Positions 2,055 to 51,695 of a DNA stretch of 64,000 nt are shown piece by piece. Both the position numbers and the translations under genes were made by a program. The stretch's first letter is position 1; every line of letters begins with the position of its first letter. The DNA comes from Syncephalis fuscata S228 (lineage: Eukaryota; Fungi; Zoopagomycota): assembly GCA_025786725.1 (NCBI GenBank), contig JAHLTZ010000062.1, forward strand, positions 9,556-73,555. The letters run 5' to 3'. The notes under the pieces are model-generated. The model saw nothing but the letters and a program-made list of their open reading frames with translations, ran no database searches and was not told the origin of the DNA.

Positions 2055-3064
2055 TTATATATAGTTACTAACAGGTATAAGCCGACTAGAATAGCTTGTT
2101 GTAGTTTCATTTATATGGATATCAGCACTGCGGATATTGTTTGGATCATTCATTGCTGAGGTGTCGGAGTCATTATTTATAGGTTTTTTTGTAACGTAAT
2201 TCACAAGTATCGTTGATGTAATATACCTAGAAAAATGTTAGCTTTGTATAAAGTCGCATGAAATACTTGCCAGTCAACGGTATAAAATATTCTTGAGAAA
2301 TCTCCTCCAACCTCGAAAACAATAATAAGGCAACAGATTACATTGCAGAGAACTATCAGGCACATTATCTGAATACCATCACGGGCCAGTTTCCTCCATG
2401 CTTCATAGCCATATCTTTGATAGCGTCTATAGGCTACAGTGCTAAAAATGATTGAAAAAAGTATGTTGCTTGGAACCATTGTGCCGATCCAGTAGAATGG
2501 GATAAAGAGATGATAGTAAGAAAAGCATCCGGCAGATTTTTCCAATACAATGTGTGAGTAGTTGTATACAATATAAATAAAGAAAAGCTGTGGCAGAATG
2601 CAAATGGTGCCACAAATGGCTACCCAGCGTTGCGATAACAGCACAAGGTAGGCTTTGTAAAGTACAATAATGCTGTTGCAAAAGATCGAAAAGCTTACTG
2701 CCGCTACAATATACCAGACAATTATCCTGCAATTGAGATGGCTTGTTAATGATGCTATTATAAGTACCACGGCATAGCCGACGCCCAAGAATGATGGAAG
2801 AAAATAGCAGACATAAAAAAAGCCGTGTGGCTGAACTCGTATTTTCTGTGCTAGACGGATCAAATTGTAGGCAAATAAAGATCCTAGTATGGTGCTAATC
2901 GTCAACTGAAGCTGAATTCCCGCCAATCGCTGCCGAACCTCAATTTTAGATGTTTCGTGGTCTTGCGATTGACTATTGACAAAACTGAAAAAGTCTATTT
3001 CGCCGAGTGGATGCAGCGGAATACCAAATATCTTTTTGGCACCTGCCTCCCATCCAGTGTCCAT
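2055..3064 (-). CDS. Orphan 7-transmembrane GPCR-like protein, HPLGE family copy 1 (exons 3064-2271, 2226-2055)
   Basis: Seven hydrophobic segments; motifs HPLGE, NCR at the top of TM3, GC in ECL2, AWRKLARDGIQ; intron 2227-2270 (GCAAGT..GCTAAC..TAG) splits the DW Trp codon as in the paralogues. Confidence 0.8.
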
Positions 3065-3247
3065 AGCTTGACGTTATATTCAGGTATAGACTGAACTGAG
3101 AAATGGCTATGAAAAGTGTTGCGTATTTAGAAAATCAATGGAATACATATTTTAGAAGGAAGACAGCAAGTAGGCCAAGGCGAATAAAGAGTAGGACTTT
3201 GGGCCACCAGTCCAAATGTTATTAATAGCACGGGATGAAGTGTTTTA

Positions 3248-3259
3248 AAAACCGGTTTT
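3248..3259. promoter_or_regulatory. Palindrome AAAACCGGTTTT, with variants upstream of all four 7TM paralogues
   Basis: Variants at 48653-48664, 50137-50148 and 51839-51850, each ~120-185 bp upstream of the start. Confidence 0.45.
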
Positions 3260-3969
3260 CGTAACACCATGAGTCATGCGATAGACCGTGTCATTCTATA
3301 TCTTCCAATTCGCATGATTGCTATTAACGTTGATCAACTAGTACCCGCATCTAATTCGCAGATTTATATGCATGTCACTCAATAGATCATAAATAGATGC
3401 GTATGCGACATAATGCATTTATTAGCTAATACTGCTTAATGTCAATAATCTATACGTTTACACTGCAAGAAATAGCTTGTCGCAGTCTATAACAAAATGT
3501 TTATCGGAATCATTAATCGCCAAACTATACTTCTGTTTAATGAATTATTTACTAATTTGTAATTACAGTGCTGGATTGACAAATGACCGCATGGTTTCAA
3601 AAGTTACACAATATTTCTATATTCAGAATATGCGTGAGCATGCACGCAATAGAAACGCACACCCATGATTGTCCATTTGTAATATATTACTTTTTATTTT
3701 ACTATGGCCATTAAACACTTATCACGGCAAATATTTTTTTTACCTTTGTTCCATTCATTTACTGCTATAAATGTAACACTCATTACATAGACTAAGAAAA
3801 ACACCATTTATTTCTCACTCAGTAGATTCCATAATATTAACCTTATTTGTAACAAGTAAAGTGGTAACAGCTTTTTTTTACGAAAAACTAAGTGTTAAAA
3901 GTATGACAATATTAGCTAAACTACCTTTATTGCACTTATATAATTAATATTGGCATACTCCCTGAAGAT

Positions 3970-4038
3970 CCCTGAAGGGAATAAATTTAATTAAAGTACA
4001 ACGAAGCTTAAATTGACCTTCGTTGATTTATGTAATTA
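3970..4038. repeat. Dispersed ~65-nt structured element, copy A
   Basis: About 80% identical by eye to the reverse complement of 52643-52707; CCCTGAAGGG end and CAACGAAG/CTTCGTTG stem. Confidence 0.7.
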
Positions 4039-4711
4039 ATGAACAGTAACAACATTTTTATTCTTAGCAGCATTATTACAGTACATAATAACCGAATAAA
4101 ACACTCAAAATTAATCACGTTTGTTTATCATGACAATTTCATATAGTTTATAAAGCAAAGTATAAAATTGAAATACAAGATTTATTATTAATAATAACGA
4201 ACAATTGTTTAAATATACTAATTTCAGTTTTAATATGTTGTTTGACTGATATTCCCATAACACTTTCAGTTATTTGGAAATGATTAATTGCCAGGTCAGA
4301 TTATTTATAATTAGCAATCAGATTTAATTATTATAGCAATAATGGTGATATAAATATTAGTATATAAACCAGATTATTTTATTAACAGAATAAGCATATC
4401 TTATATTCAGTTGCTACTTGTCATATTACTTTGAAATTAATTTATTCTTTACTACAACTATCTAACCAAATCTAGTAATTTTACAATATTGATAACCATC
4501 TATTAGCAATTGTAGACTTGTAGATAAGCTACTTGGTGTATATAGCACACTAACGCGGTGTTACACGAATTTACACATTGGTTTATGTGCATAAGTCACC
4601 GAAATAAAGACCAAGCCATAGTATTATTGCATAGTTGCTGACTACCCCTTTACTTGTTCTGTACTCATTCAAAGCCATTGTTATACTGCCAATTCAATAA
4701 AAAAAGTTAGC

Positions 4712-7575
4712 ATGAGAGTGATTCCACGCGAGCTCGACAAATTGCTGCTGCATCAATTTGGCAATGTAGCGCAAAAGCGACTAGCACGCGGTCTTTTGCT
4801 AAACACGGGAGAAGCCACCGCGCTTATTGCTTCACAGCTAATTGAACTAATGCGCGATGGAAAACATACCGTAGCAGAGCTCATGGATATGGGCAAGCGG
4901 ATGCTAGGTCGTCGACACGTCCTACCGGAAGTGCCTCATCTATTGCACGAAGTACAGGTTGAGGGCACCTTTCCAAACGGCACGTTTCTCGTCACCGTCC
5001 ACGATCCTATCTGTAGCGAAGACGGCGACTTGAAACTCGCCTTCTACGGAAGCTTTTTGCCTATACCCGAAGATACTGTATTCTCCAGACTAAGCCCACT
5101 GACGGAGACACAGCTGCCGGGTGCATTGGTTGTTCGGCCGGGGCGTATCACCCTATCACCAGGCCGTCAACGCATCAAGCTTAGCGTGACTAATGCCGGT
5201 GATAGGCCGATTCAGGTATAATCCACTACGGATACAGTTACCTATCAGTACTAATTTGGCGACATCGACTGATATCGATTTACTGATAGGTTGGCTCGCA
5301 TTATCATTTTGTTGAAACGAATCGTCTGTTGATATTTGACCGAATGGCCGCGTATGGCTACCGACTCGATATACCATCGGGTACGGCCATTCGTTTCGAG
5401 CCTGGCGATACACGTACTGTGCAGTTGGTGGAGCTAGGTGGCCAGCAAATCATTCGTGGCGGCAATCTTTTGGCTAACGGCCCAGTAACGGAGATGGGTC
5501 GACAGCAGCTAGAAACACAAATAAAAGTGCATGGCTTTGGTCATCGAGACGATCTGCGGGATGCATCTCTAACGCTATCCCCAGCAACCATGGATCGTCG
5601 GCTGTATGCCGATATGTTTGGGCCTACAATTGGCGATCGTCTTCGTTTGGGCGATACTGCGCTTTGGCTTGAAATTGAACATGATTACACAGTGTATGGT
5701 GATGAGTGTAAATTTGGCGGTGGAAAGGTTATTCGGGATGGCATGGGACAAGCCACCATTGCAACACGAGCGATGCACTGGATCTAGTGATAACAAATGC
5801 CATTATTATAGATCATAGTGGAATTATCAAAGTAAATGGTTTATTTGTTCTCAGTGAATACATACTAATTATAATGTATTATAGGCAGACATTGGTATTA
5901 AAGACGGGCTGATTAAAGCTATTGGCAAGGCGGGTAATCCCAATACTATGGATGGTGTGACGCCAGGTATGATTGTAGGAACGACAACAGAAGTACTTGC
6001 CGGAGAAGGACATATATTTACAGCTGGGCTATTGATACGCATATTCATTTTATTTGTCCACAACTTATTACTGAGGTAAGTGTGATGTGCAGGTTTATTG
6101 ATCATAATAGTAACGAATTGACTTTAAACTATATCCAGGCAATTGCTACGGGTATTACTACAATGATTGGTGGCGGTACAGGCCCCAATACAGGTACACT
6201 TGCTACAACATGTACACCAGGACAGTTCCATATCCGTATGATGCTACAGGCTACGGATGAACTGCCGGTCAATATTGGATTAACGGGTAAAGGCAATGCC
6301 ACATCGCCAATAGAACTGGAAGAACAAGTGATGGCTGGAGCTATTGGCTTGAAACTACACGAAGATTGGGGCTCAACACCGGCTGCTATCGACAACTGTT
6401 TGTCTATTTGTGATAAATACGATGTGCAGGTAATTATGGTAATTAATCTAATTGATTTATTAATATTGATGATTATTAGACGACCATTCACACTGATACA
6501 CTAAATGAATCAGGATTTGTTGAAACTACAGTGGCCGCATTTAAAGGCCGCACTATCCACGCTTATCATACTGAAGGGGCGGGCGGTGGCCACGCACCCG
6601 ATATTATTAGTGTTTGCGGTGAACCTAATGTTATTCCGTCCTCGACCAATCCTACACGGCCTTTTGCAGTAAATACGCTTGATGAACACGTTGATATGCT
6701 TATGGTGTGTCATCATTTAAGTCGCAATATCCCCGAAGATGTGGCATTTGCCGAATCGCGTATTCGTGCCGAAACAATAGCCGCCGAAGACGTACTACAA
6801 GACATGGGCGCCATTAGTATTATTTCATCGGATTCACAAGCTATGGGCCGTATCGGCGAAGTGGTGTCGCGTAGTTGGCGAACAGCACATAAAATGAAAC
6901 TGCAACGTGGCGTACTCGATGCCAACGGCGATGCAAGCAGTGGAGCCGCTGGTGATGCTAGCGAGCCACCCGTAGAAGCGGGCGCCGATAACATACGTAT
7001 TAAACGCTACGTAGCCAAGTATACAATCAATCCGTAAGTTGTTCACCACCACTACATTGATGCGCCACACTAACATTGTGCATTGAACATTAAATACTGA
7101 AAGAGCCATTGCTCATGGCATTTCGCATATTGTCGGATCAATTGAGGTGGGCAAACTTGCCGATCTAGTAATGTATGAGCCGGCCTATTTCGGTAGCAAG
7201 CCTAGTCTTATTATGAAGTCGGGTGTAATCGTATGGAGTATGATGGGCGATGCCAATGGCTCCATCTCTACAACTCAACCCATTATCGGCCGGCCTATGT
7301 TTGGCAGTTTGCCAGGTGGTGCCTCTCGTTGCAGTATGGCATTTGTTAGTGCCGCTTCATTGGAACACAATATCGTACAAACGTATGGCTTGAAGAAACG
7401 ACTAGAAGCCGTAAGAAAATGTCGCGACATTAGCAAGCACGATATGAAATGGAACAACGCTTTGCCAAAAATCGAAGTCGATCCAGAAACTTATGTGGTC
7501 AAGGCTGATGGTATTATCTGTATTTGTCCTCCTGCTATTACTCTCCCGCTTACTCAATCAGTATCGCTATTTTAA
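4712..7575 (+). CDS. URE1: Urease, eukaryotic single-chain gamma-beta-alpha fusion (multi-exon; apparent 1-nt frameshift near 5760)
   Basis: [29 protein letters not shown]|[47 protein letters not shown]; first intron 5216-5289. Confidence 0.97.
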
Positions 7576-7746
7576 TATACTGATTCTCCTTATTGATATT
7601 AATAAATGTAACCATTTTATAATTTTGTATAAATCTACATTAGTTTATTTCTATTTAACTTTCTTTTTTAATTCAACACTGATCATAGTTGTTTTAAAAA
7701 CCATTTATTGTAATTGTAATGGTTAAGCTCTAAGTATAGCATTATA

Positions 7747-9148
7747 CTAAGGCTGTCCGTTGTCTACTATCGCTGCCTTTTCTGCTACTCGGTTTTTGTT
7801 AATTGTATCGTATATCGTTAGCGCCTGTGCCACCATGCCACTAATATTTGACGTATTGGCCGGCACTACAACGGTTGTTCCTTTTTGTGCAAGCTGTCCA
7901 AATGCATCAACATATTTCTCAGCTACGGTAAGTGACACGGCATCGCGGCCACCTGGTGTCTCCTTAATGGCTCGTGCCACCTCTTCAATACCGCGGCCAC
8001 AGCTTTTGCTCTCAACAATATAGCTTCCGCTTCACCAGACGCCCTATTAATCTGCTCGGCTTTATCGGCTTCAGATGCCAGAATTGTTGATTGTTTGTGT
8101 CCCTCGGCTACATTAATGGCTGCTTGACGTGAACCTTCCGATTCAAGAATCTGTGCTCGTTTAGATCGCTCCGCCGATACTTGCGAATGCATACTCTCAA
8201 CCACATTACTTGGTGGGTGAATATCGCCTATATAACATCGGTATTAATTAGTGCCTATATCCTATCACTTTAGTAATACTTACGAATTTCATAACGCAAG
8301 CACCGAATACCCCAGTCTTCGGCTGCATGATTGATGGCTTGTACTATATTCAGGTTCAATTGGTTCCTTTCAGCCAATGTACGATCCAGTGTCATTTGGC
8401 CAATTTCTGCTCTCATCGTAGTCTGCGCAAGTTGTGCCACACTATATTCTGCATCCTCAACACCGTAACATGCCTAATAGCCGTATTATTAAAAAGCCAT
8501 GTCAGTACAGATAAACTTACCTTAAATGGATCCACTATACGAATATATAGCACACCATCCAGTTGCAAAGTTACGTTATCTGCACTATTATTAGTATACT
8601 AGCTTGTCATGCTAATTAACCCACCTTGCGTAATGGCACTTTGGGTGGGTATTTCAATTGCCACTTCCTTTAAGCTCTTCACATACTTGACCTGATCAAT
8701 AATTGGCGTTAGAATGCCAGTCCAGGCTCTAATACTCGACTAAATCGGCCCATACGCTCTACAATCCACGCTTCTTGTTGTGGAACGAATTTGATAATCT
8801 ATAGACCATAAAAGCTCGAATCAATACAATTCATAGATTGGCTCGGAGACTTACTGTATTGACGGGTAATGAACGTCGCTGAGAGCGCCAAAATACATCA
8901 CTGGGCGCGTTTTTGCCATACGGTGTGCCCGACGACATATCACGTCTTCCATTATAAATACTATTGTACTGTTGATAAAGAGCGACCACTCTAGCATTCT
9001 AATTAACCAATAAACCAATATCAAATAGTATGGTAAGTGTTTGGTTAACGATTGTAGCGCACGGTCTACTTACAGTCGGCCGCGTCATAATCCGCGTTAG
9101 AGATGCCGGGCTAGCACCTCTGGCCAGTGTGTATCTTGCTGAATTCAT
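7747..9148 (-). CDS. Stomatin-like protein 2 (SPFH/band-7), likely mitochondrial; multi-exon, with apparent indels
   Basis: LPVNT-VIKFVPQQEAWIVERMGRF, AERSKRAQILESEG, AEKYVDAFGQLA; Arg-rich N-terminal presequence. Confidence 0.92.
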
Positions 9149-9520
9149 AAGCGCAATAATAAGTGCCGATAAAGAGTAGGAAGAAGTAGTGAAAAGTACG
9201 ACGCACAATCAATAACTATGGCAATATAAGTCGTGGAAAATGCAACGCACAATCAACAACTATAACCAGTACAAGCATTGATATGAGTAATCTTTAATCA
9301 GATTGTACAATTTATCCGTTTATTAGTAAAATATTGGATATGAACATTAAAAAGATATACTTTAATGTAAATTATATGTATACAATGGCATGATTTATTT
9401 TTCTATTATTCTATTCTAATAGATGCAAGTCTCTGTTAATGTAGAATATAAATAATAGCTATATCATAATATAGCTAATTAACTATATACATCGTACATA
9501 ATAAAAGTATAACAGCATAT

Positions 9521-10321
9521 TTATTGCTTTTTCGTTCTTTCTTCCATCAATTCTTCAACCCAGCCTTTTACTAGTGGATGTTGGAATCGGCCTAATGTTG
9601 ATGCAAAAAAGCTATCCAGTGTCTTTCCTTGTGCTATAATAACATTAGTTTAGCTAATATGACCCGCTTGTATTATTGTTTACCTTTCTCGTATTCAAAT
9701 GCTTGCACAATCATTTCATATTTATCTAAATCTTTGACAAAAAGTGCTTCGTTTGTGGTTGCTTCTTCGTATTCCTGCCACAGAGAACAAATTTCATTGG
9801 CCTGCTCTGTCTCGCCCAACATTTGACGTATCTTTCCATAGCATCCTAGTAACAATAATGATACATTAATACATACGTCTTCACTTCATCACAGCCACTA
9901 CCTTTTCTAGCTTGTATTTCTCGTCTTTCGAGACACCAGCATGCGGCGTAATGTCACCCTATTCAATATACTATTATCGTTTCTATATTTATAATAAACT
10001 ATTTATGCTACTTACAACAATTGCTTCGGCAAGATCATGAACTAGAGCCATTTTAACACACCTAGTATTATGAATTAGAGCGCGTTGACACGTCTCCCTA
10101 GCTTACTTATCGCGATCTAGATTTGGATCGTTTACTAGCATCGCCATTAGTGACATGCGATGCATATGGTCTGCAATAGATTCCGGTTGCTGTACACCGT
10201 TGTCTATCCAGCCCGTCCGCTTGGTGCGCTATTCAATGCAATGATAGGCAAAGTATTCGCATACTGCATAGTAAATTACCTTTAGATTTTCACATAGATG
10301 AAAGAATTCAAGTGCTCGCAT
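9521..10321 (-). CDS. HD-domain 5'-deoxynucleotidase (HDDC2 / Ygk1-Ybr242w family), multi-exon
   Basis: [56 protein letters not shown]. Confidence 0.92.
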
Positions 10322-10501
10322 TTCTAATGTTATAACTGACGACCAACTATGTAATAAAAAGATATAACCACGTTGTTAAAAGCAGTTACAATAAAAGTGA
10401 ACAAAAAGAGAAATGCGTAATAATAGCCGCTTTAAAATATTTAAAACACGTAAAATCATTTCTATTTAATAGAAATAACACTTTACTTAAAACGTATTTT
10501 A

Positions 10502-12456
10502 TTAATCATTTTTACGTTGCTGCATTAATACCATTAACTGTTGTAGCGTGTCTTGATTTCGTTGACAAACATCTGATAATTCAAAAACTTGTGCTTGAAG
10601 CCGCCTAATTTCATCTAATTGTGCTGCTGATGCCTGGCTATGATGTATACCACGATTTGCTAATCATAGTTATATTAATTAATTAAATACAAAGTATCAA
10701 TATTAGTGGTCTATTAAACTAACCAGGCAGATGATCGGTCTCCAAGTCTTTTAGCGGCACCTGTAACAATAGTTAGCTATTATACTCTCGCTCTTCTATT
10801 TATCTTACATGCTGTCCAGGTAGTTGCGCCTGTCGTTCCTTCATCGCTTCCCATACAATGGTAAAGTTACGTCCAACAATAATGGATGGCAACGCAATTA
10901 ACTATAAATAAAATAAGCCTTTATCTTCATTATAGTCTATTTCTTACTAAAATTCCCATCATCATAGCCGGAAAGGCGATAACCTTGCCAATAAATGTCT
11001 GTGGTACCATATCACCATAACCAGTTGTAGTAATTGTAACCATTACAAACCAGCATACTGCAGGAATACTATCAAATTGGCTATATAATATATTGGTTAT
11101 TGCTATTAAATATCTATTATTAAATATATTACCTTGGCAATCCATCACTAGTAACAAACATATGTCGTTCTTCATCCCATACACCTATATATATATATAT
11201 ATATTAGTTAATACTCGTATTTAACTATAATTATATATTACCTCGTTCGGCAAAGTACAGCAATGACGAAAAAATAATTACGGTCATAGCCATAAAAAAG
11301 AATAACGCACTAAGTGCATCTGTACTTCGTTTAATTGCCACAATCATTACTTCAATAGATAACTACTAGTGTATTAGTTATTGAATACTATTAAATAGTA
11401 AAACTTACCTGAATTAATGAAGAGTGTTGATAGACACGGAACACTCGGAATAGACGGAATAATCGAAGAATACTCAAACGAAAAACATAAGTCTATAGAT
11501 ATTAATTAGTTTTATAATATATTTATACTAATCACTTACCGTATCGCTTCCCATTGCATACGCTACAATATATAATAATACAACCAATGTATCTATAATA
11601 GTCATTGGTGCTAGTGATCATTGTGATCTTTAGCGTTCTATCCATCTACTACAAGCAATACTTACACAGCATAAATTTAAAGATACGTGCTGTAGTATCA
11701 GAGTGTGCATAGACCCGCATAGATAACTCGATGGCCAGTAGAATTACTACAGCTGTTTCTAATGCAAACCTATTAACAGTCCCTTTATTAGTATACTATT
11801 TTAATAAATTTTACTGCTAAATAACACGATTTCCCTTTATTTAGTCTATACTCATTATAATACACTTACCAAATGGGCGTTTCACCAGATCGAAACTTTG
11901 GAATAGTTTCAACAGTTGCAATAATAGCACTCATAATAATCATGCACACGACAAACACGCTAATAAAGAAGGCTGCTCCACTAGATGATGGATCCTCCAT
12001 TAGCAAGTAAAAGCGTCGTTTCCAAATATTCTAGATGACATAACATTAGTCTAGCATTGCTATAGCACTTGGAGATGCGCCAGTACTTACATGGATCGAA
12101 GCAGCAGTACGGTTGCGTTCGTTCAAGTCAGGAATATCCATATAGCCGCCAGTATTATCTATCTGGGCATCGAGCTGGTTTCGCGCGTCTTCATAGTCGG
12201 CCGTGTCCGTTTCCACCGGGAATAGTTCAAAGGAGCGTCCCGAAATACGTCGCGATCGATTCGGTATCGAATGTGACGAGTAGTGCGGGTCCTGAACGGG
12301 CGATGTAGCCGTAGCGGCGCCACCCACGTCATCTATGGCCGGTCTCGGTGGGGCGGCAGCTGTGGACACTTCGCCTGTTACCTCGTTCATTTCGAGCGCA
12401 ATTTCATCGTTGTCATTGCCATCGTCGTTAAGGTAACGACGATTCACGCGCGACAT
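10502..12456 (-). CDS. Voltage-gated (6TM, Kv-like) potassium channel, multi-exon
   Basis: Pore WFVMVTITTTGYGDMVP; S4 RLSILRLFRLFRVFRV (exon ~11409-11492); LLMEDPSSS before S1; S6 IALPSIIVGRNF. Confidence 0.92.
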
Positions 12457-12927
12457 GCGAGTGTTTCGACGTAATAAAGCCGGAGTGTACAGTTTCACAA
12501 CGTCAAAACCAACAGGTAAATAAAGGTTTATACGAGTTGGACTCGAGCTATAACGACAAAGCGCTACAAGAGATGAGAGATCAATTAATAGTGTTTAGGT
12601 GGAAGTGCAGCAATAAAGTCTCTAATTGAATATCCTCACGCTATTTGATACAGATTGTGTATGTGTGCGTGTGGGCAAAGCCGGTTGATATTGTTATTAT
12701 TGCCATTGTTACCATTATTGGTATCTCAATTAACAGGCCACTATTACATTTACACTGATTGGTTACTTTTCATGATTTACGATATTCTAAATTTATCACA
12801 TTTAACAGTAATTCTACACTAACCCAGCCATTTGTTATAGTAAAATAAACAATATATTTGTAACATTATGATTAATGGTTGATACCCGTGCCATAATTTG
12901 CATTAGCTATCGATAGGCGGATTAAAT

Positions 12928-19100: not shown

Positions 19101-20670
19101 TAAGACATAGAATATCAATCATACTGTAAATGTAATATATATATTATTAGTCTATATAGCTATACTAATTACTAGTTGTATTACTTACGCCAAATCACGA
19201 AAAGTAGCGCCTAATCGCCAACGAACACCACATTCCTTAATAAGATTTAATGAACGAGCCGATAATACACGTTGGTCTGGTGGTGTTGTGCCACTTAATT
19301 GTAGTTCTGAATCCATACATACACTAACAAGCATTTTATAGCACTCGCCCGGTGATGGGGGGATAAAATTATAGGTTGGATTACGCGGATCCTAATTAAA
19401 TTAAATTAATCAAATTAAATTATCAATAAAATTATTACTTACAGCGGTATTTGATCCACCTGCAGTGGCAAATTCACGCTGTTGACCTGGTGCATATCCA
19501 CCAGAGCCTGATGATTGCAATAGACGTGGGTCAGCTGTCACACTATGAGCAATAAGTTGATTCAATTGCTGCACTTCACGCTTCTTCCATTGACTATACA
19601 GTTCAGGATCTTGAAAATCACTTGGCTTAATCGCCGGGTGATTATCGTGTTCTAAAGCAGCCAAACAGCGTTTTAAATCCTCTACTGCTGCCTAGATCAT
19701 CATCATTAATATAGAATAGACCCGTCACATAAACATGCTTGGCATTAGTACATTACAGCTATGCTAGCATTAACACTTATTGCTTTGCTATTACCTTTGG
19801 TGTACACGAGGCGCGTAGACTACGTGCCGTACGCTCATGGTCTTCAACGCTCACGCCTAATACTTGCCGTGTCCACGATACAAGGCCATCGCGGTCGTGA
19901 AAATAGACTTCACTTGTATCGGCGTGGTCACTTTCTGAAATACGTCGGCCATTCGAGTTGCTTGGTCCACTTGATGGTGCAGATGCTGTATCGTTATCAC
20001 TCTGAGTCTGTGCATTCATTTCTCGCATATAGTCTTCATACTGTTTGATCATGGCACCGACATACGGTATGCCGATACACTCATACTTTAAGCAGTCAAT
20101 GGACTCGTTGGCCATGACTTGAATATATGCCATGGGCTGTAACAGTCCTACTTCTCCCGCATAATTAACAAACTCAGACATCAAAAAGGCCACTGTGCTA
20201 TTTCTACTCATGCGATCCTTAAATGTTTGCGACTTCATAGTCGTTACCGCAAAGTTGGTAAGTGTATAAGCAATGCGCGGGTCTGAACTTGACAAGGCAT
20301 TGCGCTTTCCTTCGTAAATACGAGTAAATCGCTTGCGGAATTTACGCAAGAAATCTTTAGTCAATACTTGAGAAGGATCGTTATGTGACGATGATGACGC
20401 TTGTTGCAAAAGATCAGATAGAAAAGCGTTAACTCGTTGAGATGGACTAATATTCCAAGAGACCGGTCGCTGACCACTCGATGCTTGTAAGGAATCAGAT
20501 GCAAATTGAGGTCGCGTAGGAGAGTGGTGTTGAGGCGCATTGTTGGCCACTGCTACTCCCGCCTGACCAATGGCCTCTGTGTTCAATAGAGCACACCGCA
20601 ATACATAGCGATACAGCTCTCTTGACTTATCTTCTTGGGTGGGGTGGGCAGAGCCCGTTTCCGACCGCAT
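16136..20670 (-). CDS. Large C2 and Munc13-homology (MUN) domain protein (Ync13/Git1/Yor296w-like), multi-exon
   Basis: C2 LAENLADCDQNGLSDPYV..LNPRWDETF..DKDLVGGDD; MHD1-like SSVLDLFSIFQQQIDF; MHD2-like LHPLIDYLDKNL..LYFHGGDDGDG. Confidence 0.85.
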
Positions 20671-28500: not shown

Positions 28501-28532
<32 letters not shown>

Positions 28533-37600: not shown

Positions 37601-37783
37601 GCAATAGTATTATTGTTTTCGTTACTTAGCAGCAACAGCAACAACAACACCACCAGTAGCATCTCTCGTTCAAACTTTCATTCTCTCTTCGCTCGTATTA
37701 TCGCCACGTCTTTTTTGTGCTGAAACTACTTTCACACACACACACACACCTCTCTCTCCAATCTATACACATCAACGTTCATC

Positions 37784-39197: not shown

Positions 39198-41355
39198 TTA
39201 AAAGCGTATTTGATATCGGCCCGAATTTGTTATACTTCGTAGTCCCTAAATGATATATTCACATACCAGTGCGTGTGTGTAATTAATGTAAAACATTCAT
39301 TAGTCAGCACGTTGAACTATTTGACTTGCATGATGGTTGCGGTTTTGCTTTTTACCTTAAAGTGTGTGTATGATTCGCCATGTAATGCTAGTCCACTCAC
39401 ACGCAAACCCGAAGCAGCAAACCCGTCGATGCGAAAGTCCAATTGGGCCGTATAGCCTGATTTCGGTGTATTCTCCCTACAAATACCAACATATAGTGTA
39501 AGTGGGTATTGTTTTTATCCAACGGCGCTAATGATAGATTGCGAAGCGAATATTTCCCCAATATTTATCGACTACTTACGGACAATTAAATGTGGCGGTT
39601 AACATGGGTAGACGTTCCTTATCCGATATATTGTCCACATTCCAGTAAATAATCTATTATGGCCATTGATAAAGTGTAACAATGAATATGTGTAATATAA
39701 ATACTTACTTTATTTGATGGCTCACAGCGAACATGGCCATAGTTTGCGCTAACGTGTATATTGGTGGCTTGTGGTGGTAATGGCACAGTTAAACGGGTAT
39801 CCTCAACTGCTTTACCGCCTGTTTGTCGTGTTAATAACGATACCTCCAGACGGCTTTCTACATTTACAATAGCCATTATTATAAAACAAAAATATATGAT
39901 AAAATAAAGACTACCTTTATCCTTTGCAAACGTAATCTAGGAGAAACAATAACTGGTAATGGGAGTTTATGAAGTAGTCTATTAAACAAATAAATAAACT
40001 GTATTAATTAATTATATCAATAAAATTACCGGTATTGAAGTAACTTGAATTTGCCATCAGGTGGCACGAATGAAATAACTCGATCTGATTGAAACATTGG
40101 ATATCTAGTAAATGTTATTAATGTTATTGCTTGTATTATAACTACTCGTATCACCTGATACATGGATGAAAGCTGGCATCGGCCAATAGTGTAGGATTGG
40201 TAAATGATAACGATAAATCTGGCATGCCTGTAGTCATTATTATAGTATGATTAATAATCGTAAGTTTAAATCAATTTATATTAAAATAGACTTGCCTGAA
40301 AGACGACAATTGCACTGAACAGTGCCAAATATCTCTGCTGTTACCGCATGTCCTTTACTATATAAATAAATAACATATTTATATTAATAACTATTACTAT
40401 TGTATTACTAGCTATCTTACCTATCGGTAATGACATCCATATCTTCAAGAATATCGAAATAGATCTCGTTATTAGAGTAGCGTACATCGCCTCTTCTCCA
40501 TGGCAGACTCGATATATTGCCACTAAGTGATGTCTCAGTTGTACTAATATTGACAATCAATTAAATACATTAATATCTTTTATTCAACACTTAATACAAT
40601 CGCTACTTACTTTGTTACGCTCGCCACTGTATTCATTACACGTTGATAAACAGAAGGTGGTGGTATCATTTCCTTTAATGCATTGGGTTCAGTCATCAAT
40701 GGAAATCCATTATCAGACATTTCTTCCAATAACTAAATAATATATATATAATATTATTAATGTTATTATATAATAATTATTAAGTGTTATTTACCATGTA
40801 TACAGTAACAAAATTATCTTTGATTACGACATCTGTAACATCACCGAAATAATCATGAAATATATCCGAAATATGTCGGAGAAATGTCAATACAAGTAAT
40901 GGCGATACTATAGACACGTAGATAACACACGAATAATAGGTTAGTACATGGTACTCTATCTACAACCCATCTACTCTTCTATTGCTACTACTACTACTAC
41001 TACTCTACTACTCCCTCAACTAGTATTATTATTGTAACAATTAAAGCTTGTCTTACATTCTCGGTCAACGATCGTAAGATAGATCATTCCATCGCATAGC
41101 ATATGAACAAAAGTATGTCGCTGTGAACGCAATACAGGTGGCACTTCAACTAGACCGCCTTCTTGCTGCTCTACTAACTCGCGGAAATGGTCCACACCGA
41201 ACGATCTACCACACCCCGTAAAGGTTTCTCAATAATAACATTGCTATTCGTATAACGAAGCAATAGTCAGTTCACTCTATCTAGGCATAACTGTTCAGGT
41301 CAGCCTTATTAGAGAAAGCTTACCGAGTGCCATCCAAAATGTAAAGACTATCCAT
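39198..41355 (-). CDS. APM3: AP-3 adaptor complex medium (mu) subunit, multi-exon
   Basis: LEEMSDNGFPLMTEPNALKEMIPPP, SPWRRGDVRYSNNEIYFD, CRLSGMPDL, SFHPCI, SFVPPDGKF, C-terminus GLRSITNSGRYQIRF. Confidence 0.9.
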
Positions 41356-41626
41356 GACGTCAGTAAATGGGCAGAAAGATAGGAGTTGCAATGTGTAATA
41401 ATCAGTTTAATAGATTGATTAATAGCAATTAATACTGTATTTTATATTTACACACTTTTATTCATACACACAACACTAAATAATATAGTAGCAATGACAC
41501 ATAATAACATTAATAATAAAAATATAGTAAATAATTGGACTTTTCAACAATAATCTGTATTGATAACAATAATGGAATGCTTACATCGCTGTTAATAACA
41601 GGATGCTGGCCATTGTGCCTGGTTGT

Positions 41627-42738
41627 CTAACCCGCAAGTTTAGAATAGAGCACCAACATAATTAATGCTACTAATATAAGAATAATTGCCGCAGTAATTA
41701 ACCGATTAGTAGCCATACTATTCAATAAATGGCATAAGTATAGAAACAACAAACGAGTGCTATCAAAGAAGCCGACTACTTACCGACGTGCCATGCCACG
41801 GAGTGTGCGCTGTGCCTTATCGACATACGAATCCGCCTCATGTAACTAGGTGGCCAGTAACAGATCATTTATTAATACAGTTTACGTAAAATGTACACTA
41901 CACTTACTGTATCGCGTGTATGCTGAATTTGTTCTCTTTGTGAGCGCAAATCACCTAGAATACTTGTACCTAGTGCCTCTGTGTATCGATAATAACCAGA
42001 CATGAATAAATATATAGTTATATATATAGTTATTTATCATAATTTGCGCTATTTACCTGTTTCTAGTGCAAGTCGGTGGCCCTCCTCTAGTCGGCGCGTA
42101 CTTTGATTTAGACGGTCGGTGCCATCAAGCATACGCTGTCGATGATCAAGATACGTGCTATCAGCATCATGACCACGGCCCAATGCCGACTGGCCTAATA
42201 GATTTACTCGATCATTCGATTTGGTAGCCACTTTTTTCTACACTCAATTGCATTACTCATCAGTTGGATGCTATGGCCTACAATTCAACTACTAATAGAA
42301 CCTACCATATCACGCTTTAATTTGATCAAATCTGTTTTAGATGCTCGTAGTCGACCACTAAGCCGATCCTTAAGTGGTGCTGCATACCGACCAAGTGTCA
42401 ACTCCATCTGGCCTACCTATAGTCAATGACATATACCGATATTACAATAGCGATAATGTTTAATGATGAGCAGATAACATATACTACAGTTCGCTACTTA
42501 CAATCTCTTCCGCCTCTTCAATCTCACGCTCAGTAGCACGAATAGTGGCATTGCGTTGTTCTATATACAATAAAGTTTAATTCGTCAGTAAATAGATAAC
42601 TGCTTCGATACCAAGTGTTCACTTACCGCCAACTTGGCTAGGAATCAGCGAGTTGACCTTGTTGGCAATGGTCAGCGAAATCGCCTGGTATTCTTGTTCG
42701 TAGCTTTCAAAAAGCTGCGCATCCTGCTTGTTAGCCAT
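41627..42738 (-). CDS. VTI1: Qb-SNARE Vti1, multi-exon
   Basis: LFESYEQEY, RQRMLDGTDRL..RLEEGHRLALETE, DLRSQREQI, LRGMARR followed by a C-terminal TM. Confidence 0.92.
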
Positions 42739-43114
42739 TAGTGCTGAATGGCAGCAATAATAGTTGGTCAGTAAAGGTAAGTTACAACTAGATGGAAGTA
42801 GAACAGTTTGATAAGGTGTATTCAATCAGTCCAGGAGAAGAGGTAGTATTATATCTGTCTGTCTGTCTCTCTCTCTCTGTGTGGGTGTAGTTTAAATAAA
42901 TGAATGTCACCAAGGATGGTAATCCTCTAATAATAATCTACAAGTGATCACGTGCATATCAGCAATTTCTACACTTGTAAAAATAATAGTAATAAAAATG
43001 AACACGTCAATGATGTTTTATTTATTTATTAAACTCTACACAATGCACCAAATGCTGTAGTTGTAGTTATGATGGCTGGGCAGTAGTTACATCATCATCA
43101 TCATCATCATCATT

Positions 43115-45850
43115 TTAATCGACTTCCATGTCAGCGTCGGCCGAGTTAGATGTTGCATCGGCTGCTGCTGCATCTTTTTCTGGAGCTGGCTCACCGGCAG
43201 GTGTGCTTGGTGCAGCTGGTTCAGGCGTGGCTGGCTTTGGTTTTGGCTTTGAAAGAATAGGTGCTGCAAAGAGTACCAATGCCTAATATACCATAATAAT
43301 ACCCAAAATTAATAAATAACGCTATTTAAATGATGTAAAACTTACCTCGCGCTGTTGGAGAATATCCTTGGTGTATAAAACTGAATCCTTGTCCTTACCA
43401 AGTGCATCTTGCTGTTTTAGCTTGCTTTCGAGCCAGCTTTGGATCTTTAAGCACTGGTTGATTACCGATTGCTTATCTTCGGCAGAGATATGCTCGAAGC
43501 GAGCGTCCTGGCCTGAAGCATTAAGCGTGTACTGGTCGATAGCCTCGCGCAAAGAACGAATAGCCTTTGGCCGTTCTTCGGCTTCCTTGTAGCGAATAGC
43601 AATTGGATCGCCATGGCGGTGTAGCTCATCTAGCTTCTCGATATAAACACTTTGGTGGCATCTTCACCTTCATCGTATAGCCATTCTTCGGTGGCATTAA
43701 GCAGGGACATAAATGCACTACGTTCCTGTTCTGACGCATAGTCCTTGTAGCGCATATCAAGCTTGTCGCGCATGTCGTAAACATACTCTTCCAGAGCATT
43801 TTTACGCTCTGCCGTGTCAATAACCAAACGATCTGTTGAGTGCATCTGGCCTTCGTTTTCTTGCAGCTCAGTAATGTACGATGTTGGCAGACTAGGCGTA
43901 GTAGACACAACAGGTATTTCGTGCTTCTTAACTGTCTTCTTTGACTTCTTGGCAGCTGGTGACGGCGATGATGCATCCGCACTTGCTTCTGCCGACTTGT
44001 CGTCCGTGTCCATTTGTGCTGCTTGATCCGGAGTGGCCTCGTCTTCTTCCTTGACAATTTCTTCAGCAATATGCGCACTTTCTACAACAACAACGCCATG
44101 GATATTGACGCGGGCCTTAACACGAACTGTAGACAATTCGCCGTCCTTGGTAGGTACAACGTTCTTTACGCTGAAACGGCCAATTAGTGGCTGAGTACCA
44201 GCTGGCAGTTTGTCTGATGACACGTAAAGTGCCTCAACATCAAACGGATCTTTACGATAGAAAGTAAGGATCTTGGTGCTTGGCATGCTATTTCCCTTGG
44301 CAAATACATCGAGCTCCGATAGAGTCTGCGGGTCGTTGGACGATGGCCAGGCAAATTTGATAGGATATGGCGTAATATCTTGGACAGCGAATTCACGCAC
44401 ACGGAAAGCTGGTGATAGCATAGCACATTGTAAAGCACATCCACGAGCAATGGCTTCATCTTGATTAAGCGTAGTGCTTAATTCCTTGTGGAAAACAGCC
44501 TCTAGCTGCTGTTTAATGGCAGGAATGCGCATAGAGCCGCCTACCAACTCGATAGCATCAACTTGCTCGGCAGTAACGCCAGCATTGACCAATGCTTCGC
44601 GCACTATTGGTTCAACTCGGCTAAATAGACCGGCAGCTAGCTCTTCAAACTGATGGCGTTCTAATATCGAGCTGACATCGCGGTCATTCATCAAGTTTTC
44701 CACATTAAGTGGTGCCTTGGAGTTGGCCGATAGAACCTTCTTTAGCTTCTCGCAGGCCGTACGTAGACGAAGCATAGCCTTGCCGTTGGATTTGACATCA
44801 ATCTTGTACTTTTCTTTAAATTCTTCGCAGAAATGGTCGCAAAGTACTTCGTCAAAGTAACGGCCACCCAAATGGATATCAAAAGCAGTACCCTTGATCA
44901 ATAGCTGTCCCTTTTTGAACTCGACTACAGCAACGCTGAATGAAGAGTGGCCCATATCGGTAAACACAACAGTACGTGGCTTGTCTTCCGGCAGATCGGT
45001 CTTGGTAATGCCATAACCGAGCGCAGCTAATGGACAGTATATGGTTAGTTAGTTAAAAGTCAATCTATAATATATAGCACTTTATTACTCACCAGCCGTT
45101 GTGTCGTTCATCAAACGAAGGCAATTAAGGCCTGCAATCTCTGCAGCATCCAAAAGTGCACGTCGTTGGCCATCGGTAAACCAGCCAGGTACAGAAAGAA
45201 CTACATCAGACACTGGTGCCTTCAACTCGGCCACTGCAGTTTCGCGTAGACGAGCAAGATACATTGCGATAAGCTGCACTGCTGAGAATGTAGTGTCATT
45301 GTCTAGATAATTGACCTATATGTACAGTTAATAAAAGCCAATCTATCGCTTAAGCTAATCTGTGCCTACCTTGGCACCAACTTGGCCGTTCACGTCGCAT
45401 AATTCGGCAGTAATAAAACGCTTTTCCACTTGTTGCACTTCTGGATCATCGAAACGACGACCAACAAGACGCTTCAACGCGGCAACCGTATTACGGAAGT
45501 TACTAATTTCCTACAAAGTTAACAGTATTAGTCGAATGTATTAATGAAAATATTATGTCATACATTAGTTTTGGCTGATTCGCCCAAATAGCGTTGCTTT
45601 GAACCAAACGATACTAACGAACTATAGCAAGTTTGAAATTTTAGTACACAGCAAGTCTAGACGACTAATTCCTATACTTACGGTGTAGCACGATTGGATA
45701 CTTCATTGCAAATGACGTCAATACCACGATTGCGTGCCACTGCAATTACCGACTGTAAATTGCCGAAATCAATACCTGTATACCATGTAGCAGTTAGTTG
45801 CTGCGCATCATAGAAACTACTCAAGCATTCGACCTACCAACAACCGACAT
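43115..45850 (-). CDS. SSE1: Hsp110/Sse1 (Hsp88) chaperone and nucleotide-exchange factor (apparent indel ~43650)
   Basis: [59 protein letters not shown]-terminal MEVD. Confidence 0.95.
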
Positions 45851-46026
45851 GATGTAGAAAGAAAGTTGCGCTAAAGAACAGAGATACAAAGAGCAGATGA
45901 AAGAACTGTAACCGTTGCAAACGAAAGAGAAACGAAAATCGACTGGCTAAATATGCGCGCCTTTTTTTAATTGGTTGTAATGCTTCAAATAAAAAAACTG
46001 ATAAGCGAATCTGACACGACCTCACA

Positions 46027-46049
46027 TTCTAGCATGTTCCACATGTTTC
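46027..46049. promoter_or_regulatory. Putative heat-shock element upstream of SSE1
   Basis: TTCtaGCAtgTTCcacatgtTTC: TTC units at 10-nt spacing, ~180 bp upstream of the ATG. Confidence 0.5.
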
Positions 46050-47540
46050 CATCACCAAATTTCTGTTATTATCGATTGAGTAACATCATTTTAATTTTTC
46101 GGGTAAACCTTTGCAGTGTAGCTAGATCACTATAGTTATAATTACTATTTTTACCTTTTTAATTTTGGTTGAAATATGTATTCTTAATAAATATTACATA
46201 GGAGCTACTATGCTTTGACTTCACATTTTTATTTATCCATTTCACCCTTCAACACGTTTAAATACGTTAAACACCCATTCATCACTATAACATGTATAAT
46301 ATTACGTCCAACATTGATTAATTCATGTGTAATTATTAATACAATAATGTAATTAAATATGCCCAAAATGCAATACTCGAAAATTGGAAAATAAACAGAC
46401 CATTCAAACGCAAGAATCCATGCTGTACGTAGCTGCAACAACTGCGGAATGACATGGAATTGTAATTATATGGCTTTTATTAATATTCAATCAATCTTTC
46501 TACGTATGGCCAACAACAACAATAATCAACCTCAAATGTTTCAAAGTAGTCGAATAGTATGTTACATTCTTTTATTTAAATTAATTTATTAACAACATCT
46601 TAATAGGAAGTAATATAACTATGTTGTGCATTATAATGGTATAACTCTGATTGGAACGAATTGTGCTTTGGGGACAGATGTGGGAGTGTCATAGTTCAGC
46701 CAAAAACAGCTTTTCTATAAAATCCATAGTATTTCCATGTAAAAGTAATAGATTTAAATTGCTATATTTGAAACAGCACCAATGCATTGCTGTTGATTCG
46801 CAAATTGACAATGTTTCTAAAACATCCGTTGCTGGAACATGATTCAATTGCATTTTGATTCAATGCCATTTTATCAATGCTACGATAGTACCATATTTGA
46901 TAACTATAGATCACCTAGATTGTTTCACACTAAAAATCGTAACTACACTTTTGCTATATTTTAAATGCTATTTTCTACTTATGTAGAGCATAGCTATATA
47001 GCTGATTAATTTTTTCTAATAATAAATTTTGAACAAGTTCAGTTAACTCATAATCTATGTATTTATATATGTTTGTAATTGTATTTTGTAATATCATTAC
47101 AATTCATTACAAGCAATACCGATAACTTAATTAGTTAGTTTTTATCTATTTTTATTAATGCTATTAAACAACTTACTAAATATTTAATGTAATTGGGAGA
47201 GGAGATCAAATGATTAAACTTGGAACATTTTCTATTAAACATGAAATTAAGTGGCGAGTGACACCAGTCATCGAAATATTATTTTTTAAATACTTTATAG
47301 CAACAGCAATAATATGGATTTGGGGTTGGTATGATGTTATAGCAACAAATCTTATTTTCAGGAGTAAAAGTCGATGGCAATTTATACAAAATGAAGCGTA
47401 ATTGATGCATTTTAGCATATTATAAATTATTCTGTTACCACCAATAGTCGTTATTTCTGCTAAACTAGTTGCTAATTCTCTATTGCTGTAATGCCTTTTT
47501 ATGCTTCAACCTTTGTAAATTTATAGATTCGATGACAATT

Positions 47541-48499
47541 CTATAAAGTATTGGCCATATGGTACCTTTTACGACTAGCAAAAGAGCTAGTTTTACTCTT
47601 TACGGTTCGGCAATGTCTGATCAGTATTGTACTAACAAGCACCCTAGATTCGTATTAGTACATCAATAATGTTCAATGTGTTAAGGCCCACCAATCTGCA
47701 AGAAACAACAGGTCAGTGTTTCCCCCAACTATATGAAATATTATGCAAATGCAACAAATGATGTTGCATAGCACGGCCAGACACATTGCTTGAATACCAT
47801 CGCGTGCTAGTCGTTTCCATGCGTCCAATCCATACTGGCGATACTGTTGTAGCGCCACGTAATAAAATATGCTTGAAAAAAGTAAATTAATTAATACTGC
47901 TGTCCCAAACCAGTACCATAAGAAAAACGGCGGATAGTTAAATACACAGCCGCTATCTGCCGTCAGTAAAGAGAAGCTGTAGAACACAATTAAAAACCCG
48001 TATACTAGATGTGACAATGTCAGTGGAATACCAACATATGCCACCCATTTTTGGCGATCAAATATCAGATAGGCCTTTTGAAGTAAAATCAAGCTATTGC
48101 AAAAGTAGGAAATTGATATTCCAAATCCAATAAACCATATTGTATGTCGACAATTGAAAACACTGCCCAACTCCATAAGCATAATCATCAGACCGGTTAG
48201 AATTCCAAGGACAGTAGGGACTAGACAGCACCATGAAACTAGGATATATGGTCGCGCTATCACCATCTTGAACGAAATGATAAAGTTGCGTAAAATAATG
48301 AAGGATAGTACTGGAATGGTTATTATTTGCGTTTTGCTACCAAACCATTGATTGCGTTGATCTTCTATACTGTTGGATGCCATCATATAAAAGTCCAGTA
48401 TACTGACTTCACCAAGTGGGTGAGCCGGATTACCCCATAGCTTTGTTGCGTTTCTTATCCATTCGTTTGCAGCTGCATTGTTTAGTCTATGACCGGCAT
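47541..48499 (-). CDS. Orphan 7TM GPCR-like protein, HPLGE family copy 2 (intron 47644-47691; 1-nt indel just after the start)
   Basis: MPVID(Y)NNAAANEW..WGNPAHPLGE, NCRH, DSGC, AWKRLARDGIQ, DW split by the intron. Confidence 0.8.
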
Positions 48500-49101
48500 T
48501 AACAGCTCTGTGTATCAAACATATAATAGGTAGTAAAATAATGTTAAAAGCAATAAATACGATATTGGAATGGGATTATGAGCATTTATGAATCAACGCC
48601 AGTTTACTATTTTTGCCCTTAGTTTTTATGCATAGCGACTAGTTATGGCAATACAACTGGTTTTATTATGAGTGAATATGCGTATATTCTATTGTGGTCG
48701 AACAACATGTAGCCTTAGCCGATTGCACAGTAAGTACCCTTGCGCCTGTCTCGGCTCTTAGCAACAGCAGTAGTATAATACTGCACACAAATAAGTCCCA
48801 TGAACTTTTCAGCAATAGTCTATCCGTAGCAGTGACTTGCTGTATCGCATACATGATGTTATGAATGGAATATAGAGTTTGCACAGACATAAGCACATTA
48901 CTAAATTTAAACCTTTGTGATCGTACAACTGTAATATTCTAATTTAGCATCAGCATTTCACATTGTATAATACCAATCATTGTAAAGTTATATTTTTAAG
49001 CAACATTTATATGAATTATATAAAATATTTGCTAAACAATAGTTAAATTCAAAGGTGACCGTTCATTAGTTCATGCTTTTAGAAATGGTAACCTTTGAGA
49101 A

Positions 49102-50015
49102 TTAGCAATTCAATGTTTTGAAGTTACTTGAATCACTAGAGTTATTTTGTACAGATTGGCAATGCTTAATTAATATAGTACTAACAGCAATCCTATACAT
49201 ATATACATTAACAAATCTTATATATATCGCAGTATTAAAGCCTACCAGCCTACATGAAATACCATGCCTATACAGCAAATCATGTTGCATAGCACAGCCA
49301 AGCACGTTAGTTGAAAACATTGCGTACTAACCATCTCCACGCATCTGAACCATGTCTACAATATTGCTTTAGTGCGATGTAGCAAAAAACACCTAAAAAA
49401 GTAGATTAATTGGCGCTGTCGTTGCAAGCCAGTACCACAGCAGCGACGAAGGGTGGTTAAACGTAAAGCTGCTGTCTGCAGTCAGCGTAAAGAAGCTGTA
49501 GGATATAATTAAAAATGAATATACTAGATGCGACGATGCCAGTGAAATGCCAACATATGTCATCCATTTTTGCCGATCAAGTACCAAGTACGCTTTTGGA
49601 GTAGATCAAGCTATTTCAAAAGTAGGACATTGATATTCCAAATAAAATGCATCATATAGTATGTCTGCAATCAAAGCCAAGACCCAAATACACAATTATA
49701 GAAATTACGGCAACTATAAGTCCGAAATAGTAGGAATTAAGCAGCATCATGAAGCTAGAATATATGGTTGTGCTATCACCATTTTGGAAGAAATAATAAA
49801 GTTGCGCAAAAAATAAATGTTAATACTGGAACAAGCATTAATTATATTTTGCTGCTAAACCACTGATTGCGTTGCTCATCTATATCACCAGATGTTATCA
49901 TATAGTAGCCCAATATATTAATTTCGCCGAGTGGATACATTGGATTGTTCCATATTTTTAGTGCATGTTTCATCCATTCATTGGTGGTGGCATTACTGTA
50001 GTCGGTAGCCGGAAT
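49102..50015 (-). pseudogene. Decayed HPLGE-family 7TM copy 3
   Basis: Start position reads ATT instead of ATG; YPLGE motif; multiple frameshifts and stops; multi-codon deletion before TM7; ECL2 Cys replaced (DSSF). Confidence 0.7.
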
Positions 50016-50709
50016 CTTTTACTGTAAATGTTTGTTCAAATAAAAGTATTAAGAAAACGCTAAAAATTGAATTAAAGTTGACGTGATCCGTTACTTACCA
50101 TCCTTGAAATGTACGCATGATAACCTGTCATGACTATAAATCGGTTTTCTCAACGATATTGGGGAAGTATCAAATATTCTACTACAACCTTTAGTACAAC
50201 TAAATATATTACAAATGCTTAGTTTTATATAAAAACATACACGTGTAACATTTCGATTTAGGCCTACATCATTAAAACATATTTTATAAAATAACATTGC
50301 AATAATGTAAATTCTGGCGTAGAATGTGTAAAACTATTAGCATAGCTAATGTAACTTAGTGTAAAAACATTATACTTTCTTATCATATTTAGTATGCACA
50401 AAAATAATGATCACTACAAAAGTGTAATAAAGATAATTTTATTAATGTTATAATATGTCATTGTATATACATATATATGTGTGTGTATGTGTAGAACTAC
50501 TTTAATGCATACTATTCTACCAGTGTTTTTGGATAGTGTTTTGTAAAAGTAATTGCTAGTTGTAAGCATAGTTCGCAATACCAATAATTACTGTAACCGG
50601 TACATAACATCGTATCACCACATTGATATATCGTAACAAAAAGTGGTGGCTACTCTACTTGTTACAGGTAATTAAAACTAGATTGTTATGCTAAACATTT
50701 ATTTGTATG

Positions 50710-51695
50710 TTATTTTATAAATAGTACGCTTTCAGGTTGGAACGAGTCAATAATACAATATTTTTTGAGATCGCTTGAATCACTAGAGTTATTTTTTACA
50801 GATTGGCAATGCTTGATCAATATAGTACTAACAGCAATCCTAGACATATATTAACAAATCTTATGTATATTGCAGTATTAAAGCCTACCAGTCTGTAACA
50901 AATAACAGATCGGCATTTCCTCCACCTATATGGAATGTTAAGCCTATACAGCAAATAATATTGCATAAAACGGCCAAAGACATTTGCTGAATACCATCGC
51001 GTGCTAATTGCATCCAGGCATTTGATCCATGTTGGCGATATTGCTTCAATGCAATGTGGCAAAACACGCCTGAAAAAATTAAACTAATCGGCGCTGTCAT
51101 TGTAAACCAAAACCCCACAACAAACGGTGGGTAGTTAATTGTGCATCCGCTATCTGCAGTCAGTGCGGAAAAACAATAGGGTATAACAGTAACGAAATAG
51201 AATATATTTAACGATATCAGTGGAATACCAACATATAACAACCATTTTTGCCGATCAAGTATCAGGTAAGCTTTTGAAGCAAAATCAAATTGTTACAAAA
51301 ATAAGATATTGATATCCCGAATGTAATGAACCATATCGTATGCCTGCAAATAAAAATCCAACCCAGGTACATAAGCATAGTTATTGAGCTAGCCATAACT
51401 CCAAGAATACTAGGAATTAGACAGCACCACGAAACTAAGATATATGGTCGCATTAGCGTCATTTTGACGAAATGATAAAGTTGTGTAAAATGATAAATGA
51501 CGCTATTAGAAGGAATAATATCTGTAGTTTACTGCCGAACCATAGACTGCGTTGTTCGTCTATGTTGCCGGATGCCATCATGTAAAAGTCTAGCGTGTTA
51601 ATTTCACCAAGTGGATGAAGTGAATTACCCCATAGCTTTTTCGCATGTTTCCTCCATTCGTTGGTAGCTGCATTATTGTAGTCGATAACCGGCAT
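50710..51695 (-). CDS. Orphan 7TM GPCR-like protein, HPLGE family copy 4 (intron 50840-50888; ~3 single-base indels, artefact or recent pseudogene)
   Basis: MPVIDYNNAATNEW..LHPLGE, ICRH, DSGC, AWMQLARDGIQ, DW split by the intron. Confidence 0.7.

Follow-up and report, generated by a model that had tools for sequence, protein, structure and literature searches.

The 64,000-nucleotide stretch of the Syncephalis fuscata genome considered here (contig JAHLTZ010000062.1, positions 9,556 to 73,555; "the window" below means this whole 64-kb stretch) raises the question of what is done by a family of seven-helix membrane proteins for which it carries four related loci. S. fuscata is a zoopagalean mycoparasite (Zoopagales, Piptocephalidaceae). 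The way in which obligate Zoopagales mycoparasites, which are not easily grown or manipulated, find and recognize their hosts is to our knowledge unexplained. An initial annotation of the window took the four loci to encode an expanded, lineage-specific set of receptors resembling G protein-coupled receptors (GPCRs). This family is undescribed in the literature searched, where no account of it was found; its named members come only from Zoopagales, and its proteins are of about 300 residues with seven helices. A role as receptors is the best-supported reading and somewhat the favoured one, on three kinds of evidence, namely fold, topology and the dynamics of the repertoire.

When the window was searched by tblastn with four family proteins as queries, exactly four places matched, and these are the homologues that had been claimed at 2055-3064 (copy 1), 47541-48499 (copy 2), 49102-50015 (copy 3) and 50710-51695 (copy 4), all on the minus strand. 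They match the family profile with E values of 1e-106 to 1e-123, far beyond chance. The N-terminal motif described as common to the four is present in each of them once the pattern is widened to W-x3-A-x-K-x-(W/F)-(G/N)-x3-(H/Y)PLGE. The other claimed signatures, NCR at the start of transmembrane helix (TM) 3, GC in the second extracellular loop (ECL2) and AW-x2-LARDGIQ, are found in copies 1, 2 and 4. These shared motifs recur in family alignments of 25 and 88 sequences. The common intron within the "DW" codon of TM7 was correctly recognized in all four copies; it is of phase 2, splitting the Trp codon behind its second base, and copy 3 retains it.

The expansion of the family, which the initial annotation had read from four copies, is far larger than the window indicates. 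The 29.4-Mb genome was searched in six frames with the family profile; 127 of 548 first-look candidates were scored and yielded 130 matches, of which three are second exons. About 108 of the scored loci have a full-length exon 1 in one open frame (a hand count that includes some loci duplicated on redundant contigs). A degenerate ARDGIQ pattern occurred at 79 coding sites versus none in the reversed control. An Arg codon is used at 71 of the 79, and when these were matched to scored loci by hand, 41 lay in scored loci, 8 belonged to the copy-1-like repeat fragment described below and 22 marked further loci. The family in S. fuscata comprises at least 146 loci, with a capture-recapture estimate of about 190, which puts its size at some 150-200 loci. 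Twenty extra stretches that were examined contained 21 loci, all of them family members and all broken, and 8 of these carry three or more breaks or in-frame stops, beyond the error rate of the assembly. At every locus the exon 1 match ends at about profile position 264 and the exon 2 match begins at 262-266, so that the position of the intron is family-wide.

Birth-and-death evolution had also been proposed, and at the level of the genome it is supported both by tandem arrays and by genuine pseudogenes; within the window, however, "death" applies to copy 3 only. On contig C361 the arrays contain one gene per 1.4-1.8 kb. A tree built from 26 sequences groups copies 2 and 4 as sisters (support 100/99) and places copy 1 in the other major clade; species labels are interspersed, with cross-species orthologue pairs beside clusters found in S. 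fuscata only. For this tree only, the breaks of copy 4 were bridged with X. In the searches the exons of copies 1 and 4 were left unjoined, copy 1 being represented by exon 1 only, and copy 2 entered in spliced form solely as the database protein P0001. In DNA sequence, copies 2-4 share 71-75% identity with one another and 61-65% with copy 1; the intergenic DNA of copies 2-4 is not conserved.

The proposed lineage specificity held among the matches listed, where all those with a name belong to Thamnocephalis or to one of three species of Syncephalis. A word-index search recovered 29 relatives, of which those with a species name were all Syncephalis, plus one ENA sequence. An exhaustive profile search gave 324 clusters at 50% identity (245 at E<=1e-10), and 20 lower-ranking matches that were looked up came from S. 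fuscata, S. plumigaleata, S. pseudoplumigaleata, Thamnocephalis sphaerospora (Sigmoideomycetaceae), or metagenome or Logan assemblies; the matches listed extend down to about 1e-29, and the taxonomic range may be wider. Repeating the word-index search with the 88-sequence alignment did not widen it, returning Syncephalis proteins and one gene fusion. P0164 and P0185, in which a family member is fused to a HAD-domain RNA repair protein or a WD40 protein, are probably merged gene models. The automatic UniProt names of three S. pseudoplumigaleata members disagree with one another (P0015, "Srx"; P0022, "family 2 profile"; P0028, "family 1 profile"), and none of these labels was reproduced by Pfam at E<=10.

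The fold of the family was predicted with AlphaFold2 from the 25-sequence alignment, using copy 2 (P0001). The model (pLDDT 86.3, pTM 0.83) has seven helices, at residues 40-77, 82-105, 112-141, 146-169, 186-218, 220-249 and 259-297, with a beta-hairpin (171-175, 179-183) between TM4 and TM5 and a structured region in the N-terminal 40 residues. No helix 8 is claimed, since the last helix is continuous from 259 to 297 and of low confidence at its end. The earlier claim that this is a GPCR-like fold fared well in a Foldseek comparison with the Protein Data Bank (PDB), in which each of the top 50 matches was a class A GPCR (E 1.3e-4 to 1.8e-3); 7tm_1 clusters of the ESM Atlas were also matched, with TM-scores of 0.56-0.63.

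The topology signals agree with the claimed arrangement of seven helices with the N-terminus outside (N-out). In the 88-sequence alignment, Lys plus Arg amount to 0.07-0.55 per outer loop versus 1.1-2.3 per inner loop and are concentrated in intracellular loops (ICL) 1-3 and the tail. The N-terminus is acidic and contains N-x-S/T in 49 of the 88 sequences. The least variable columns (entropy 0.09) are Cys112, with which TM3 begins, Cys180, on the second ECL2 strand, and Trp223; the Cys pair reported by the initial annotation is thus a property of the 88-sequence alignment, and the two residues presumably form a disulfide. The family consensus also includes LLQKAYL at the end of TM3 and DW..V.TIL..HC in TM7, and conservation is higher in the inner half of the protein than in the outer (p=0.004).

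The same data bear on the idea that these proteins are photoreceptors or pumps resembling microbial (type I) rhodopsins. This reading was rejected, as the Schiff-base Lys is missing from TM7: no conserved Lys is found in that helix, the maximum frequency at its core columns being 0.09. In addition, the loop with the hairpin joins TM4 to TM5 and not TM2 to TM3, no bacteriorhodopsin Pfam match was found among 25 members at E<=10, and Foldseek favours class A GPCRs. Where the hairpin lies, together with the Cys pair and the lack of that Lys, favours a GPCR-like protein over a type I rhodopsin-like one, and the rhodopsin reading is very improbable.

Several results weigh against the receptor reading. 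The initial annotation had remarked that the proteins do not look like known GPCR classes, and in sequence this is borne out: 25 members gave no match to Pfam GPCR families even at E<=10 (copies 1 and 2 gave no 7tm_1 match at E<=1, and none of the 25 matched the Dicty_CAR profile), a profile search against PDB chains returned chance matches only (E>1), and hhalign, comparing the 88-sequence profile with the cAMP-receptor-like GPCR that this genome encodes, gave a probability of 0.9%. The class A microswitches (E/DRY, NPxxY and D2.50) are absent from the family consensus. The Foldseek TM-scores are only 0.40-0.53, and the best ESM Atlas match is the uncharacterized DUF6533 (TM-score 0.67), followed by DUF6534 (0.64). 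Finally, the most variable parts are ECL3 and the outer halves of TM1, TM2 and TM4, which are not the classical pocket helices, whereas the usual pocket helices TM3, TM5, TM6 and TM7 are fairly conserved.

These observations lead to a rival in which the family has seven TM helices but a role other than reception, such as trafficking, lipid handling, structure or transport, and is a distant fungal relative of DUF6533/DUF6534 or of THH1/TOM1/TOM3-type proteins that expanded for some other reason. In addition to the Atlas matches and the missing link to any GPCR class, such a reading draws on language-model features, by which the family forms its own Zoopagomycota cluster with a chytrid "THH1/TOM1/TOM3" cluster next to it at 0.93 (the nearest that bears a name), and on the conservation of the core helices TM3, TM5, TM6 and TM7 on both sides. 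However, copy numbers in the hundreds, dense arrays and many pseudogenes typify repertoires for sensing or recognition and not housekeeping proteins, and an ECL2 hairpin with a near-invariant Cys pair, together with the N-out topology, suits receptors. The top Foldseek ranks are occupied by GPCRs only, and PF20151, PF20152 and PF06454 found no match among 25 members at E<=10. A non-receptor role is regarded as rather unlikely, though it deserves to be taken seriously.

If the proteins are receptors, the next question is what they would signal through. Two G-alpha loci lie above the Pfam cut-off in the genome, and one of them encodes a 353-residue Gi-like protein of the GpaA/FadA type (P0186). 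A predicted complex of P0001 with this S. fuscata G-alpha scored 0.14, the mark being 0.34, a result that speaks neither for binding nor against it. The two loci are 15 kb apart on one contig (C306:469000-471200 and C306:484300-486400), and family members at C306:395992-400558 lie about 70 kb from them. Recognized GPCR families are few in this genome: Dicty_CAR accounts for 3-4 loci and 7tm_3 for about 11 weak matches, and the only 7tm_1 match is a separate cAMP-receptor-like gene outside the family. A small Dicty_CAR cluster on contig C212 (163300-165700 and 178800-181200), the one locus of the genome that scores with 7tm_1, is within 2 kb of a family member.

A sensory receptor with seven TM helices need not use heterotrimeric G proteins; it could be a ligand-gated channel like the insect odorant receptors, or could engage some other partner through the face that bears AWKRLARDGIQ. 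The disparity between about 100 receptors and two G-alpha loci would fit such an arrangement, as would the lack of class A coupling motifs and a cytoplasmic motif unlike known G-protein-binding faces. However, in many animals hundreds of receptors are coupled to few G-alpha proteins; moreover, a length of about 300 residues with short loops is like that of a minimal GPCR, and nothing was found that argues for a pore. Signalling of this kind, independent of G proteins, is considered quite unlikely.

On the receptor reading, the seven-helix proteins with their GPCR-like fold would be sensory receptors at the cell surface, presumably in the plasma membrane. The acidic and often N-glycosylatable N-terminus, with its conserved W..A.K..G...HPLGE cap, would lie outside, as would the ECL2 beta-hairpin, probably tied by the disulfide to the top of TM3. 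The binding of a ligand would be relayed by the conserved cytoplasmic face (LLQKAYL at the TM3 end; QYR..GSDAWKRLARDGIQ across TM5, ICL3 and TM6) to a common transducer, presumably one of the genome's two G-alpha proteins. The repertoire would gain members by tandem duplication and lose them by pseudogenization; copies 2-4 would then be an old local array in which copy 3 has died. A more ambitious version, which we hold only tentatively and would not be surprised to see fail, sees in the family the principal set of sensory GPCRs in zoopagalean mycoparasites. Some 100 functioning receptors, linked by sequence to no known GPCR class, would sense cues from the host or the environment through just the two G-alpha proteins, with the HPLGE cap as a lid or tethered element over the pocket, and the whole would be a fungal counterpart of animal chemoreceptor repertoires.

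The condition of the individual genes must also be considered, in that the four stand as homologues but the frame is open throughout in copy 1 only; it is broken in copies 2 and 4, and copy 3 is decayed. Exon 1 of copy 1 (2271..3064, minus strand, as are all features of the four copies) encodes the N-terminal cap with HPLGE and the segment from TM1 to the first half of TM7 in 264 open codons, and its profile match lies at C331:11804-12625 (E 1.9e-106). Among the relatives compared, the closest to copy 1 is P0037 (60%). The intron (2227..2270) is of 44 nt and interrupts the Trp codon of DW in phase 2. It is probably a GC-AG intron, with the donor GCAAGT in place of the GT of the other three copies, because no other splice preserves the conserved "STIL" segment of TM7. 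Exon 2 (2055..2226) encodes the remainder of TM7 and the cytoplasmic tail.

Copy 2 consists of exon 1 (47692..48499), a 48-nt GT-AG intron (47644..47691) with a TACTAAT branch-like site, and exon 2 (47541..47643). Exon 1 is open apart from a 1-bp gap near 48482-48484, after codon 6, which leaves the ATG at 48499-48497 out of frame with the remainder. The GenBank protein P0001 of S. fuscata, annotated as "partial", matches this copy with 100% identity and has the identical 48-nt splice. Exon 1 of copy 4 (50889..51695) runs through three frames, with 1-bp gaps at the A4 runs 51465-51462 and 51275-51272; beyond these two gaps it has no lesion and keeps all of the invariant residues, and it is followed by a 49-nt GT-AG intron (50840..50888) and exon 2 (50710..50839). 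Copy 3 (49102..50015) is a decayed pseudogene. Its start codon is changed from ATG to ATT, CAA has become TAA at 49844-49842 and TGG has become TGA at 49749-49747, and there are two more TGA codons. The codon for the ECL2 Cys is changed from TGT to TTT at 49467-49465, and the copy has at least six 1-bp gaps plus a 33-bp deletion ahead of the DW codon.

How such breaks should be judged is indicated by a multi-copy repeat that overlaps copy 1. The contig's first 12,269 bases (C331:1-12269) recur on eight other contigs with 98-99% identity, and the right end of this repeat, which is at least 12.3 kb long and carries Ty3/gypsy gag, protease, reverse transcriptase and RNase H, occupies window 1..2714. 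Its boundary falls within exon 1 of copy 1, where TM3 begins. All eight of the other copies stop at one identical base there, and the genome has no second copy of the upstream third of copy 1, so that either the 3' two-thirds of copy 1 are a passenger of the multi-copy block or the contig has been joined at this point. Where repeat copies were compared, 61 gap events and 3 mismatches were counted over 10 kb, 109 and 6 over a second 10 kb, and 36 and 9 over 3 kb; about 80-95% of the differences are single-base gaps, mostly in homopolymers. Such a pattern marks long-read consensus error and not divergence. Isolated 1-bp frameshifts anywhere in the assembly are consequently suspect, the gaps in copies 2 and 4 do not show that these genes are dead, and both copies may be intact. 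Substitution errors, on the other hand, are rare in this assembly, so that the nonsense substitutions and lost invariant residues of copy 3 are real, and copy 3 is a true pseudogene. The view that all broken copies are pseudogenes was abandoned after the repeat comparison, which put 1-bp indels at about 90-95% of the differences in the assembly.

The overlap with a retrotransposon-bearing repeat, and the many broken copies, might suggest that these are not real genes but open reading frames (ORFs) carried by repeats or transposons, or artefacts of annotation. This explanation is hardly credible, because the roughly 108 loci retain 800 nt of open exon and share the conserved position of the intron, orthologue pairs have been kept between species, and the arrays are without transposon genes. 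Furthermore, residues that do not vary and a fold predicted with confidence point to a folded protein under purifying selection.

The neighbours of the array in the window are an Hsp70 gene and one unassigned ORF, and no functional partner is suggested nearby. Long ORFs with no Pfam match at E<=0.001 are found beside the array and elsewhere in the window, at 53183-54397, 58492-59313 and 59441-60109 on the plus strand and at 19777-20670 on the minus strand.

The family outnumbers the recognizable GPCR families of the genome combined by more than 10:1, and catalogues based on Pfam would miss it wholly. It is a testable candidate for the means by which a mycoparasite senses its hosts or surroundings. 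If the proteins are receptors, they provide concrete, clonable candidates for host sensing in mycoparasites and an independent case in which a large chemoreceptor-like repertoire has evolved in fungi; if they are not, so large an expansion of a GPCR-shaped protein still calls for explanation.

Several known systems can be set beside this one. Class A GPCRs (such as orexin-1, SSTR2, CCK1R and LPA1) share with it the seven helices, the N-out orientation, the Cys at the top of TM3 with its counterpart in an ECL2 strand, and an N-terminal cap over the bundle; in contrast to them, the family has no 7tm_1 match and lacks E/DRY, NPxxY, CWxP and D2.50, having its own HPLGE, LLQKAYL and AWKRLARDGIQ instead. 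The DUF6533/DUF6534 proteins of Basidiomycota, likewise uncharacterized fungal proteins with seven TM helices, are its best Atlas neighbours over about 250 residues, although no Pfam match joins the two at E<=10, and because the function of these domains is itself uncharacterized the likeness adds no mechanism. The THH1/TOM1/TOM3 proteins, to which the family has no PF06454 match, are approached through their chytrid members in the language-model comparison, which offers a lead only.

The remaining parallels are with expanded families. PTH11-type and related fungal 7TM families have been catalogued in Trichoderma mycoparasites (PMC3664084). Such families have been proposed as sensors of hosts or surfaces in parasitic fungi. 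Those of Pezizomycotina are, like the present family, fungus-specific, GPCR-like and present in many copies, whereas the present family belongs to Zoopagomycota, is shorter, and has neither a CFEM domain nor a sequence match to them (as compared by Pfam scans only). The nematode Sr and vertebrate odorant receptors are not homologous to it, and its own variability is mainly in TM1, TM2, TM4 and ECL3; nevertheless, like those receptors, it consists of hundreds of intron-poor paralogues, with tandem arrays, pseudogenes and evolution by birth and death.

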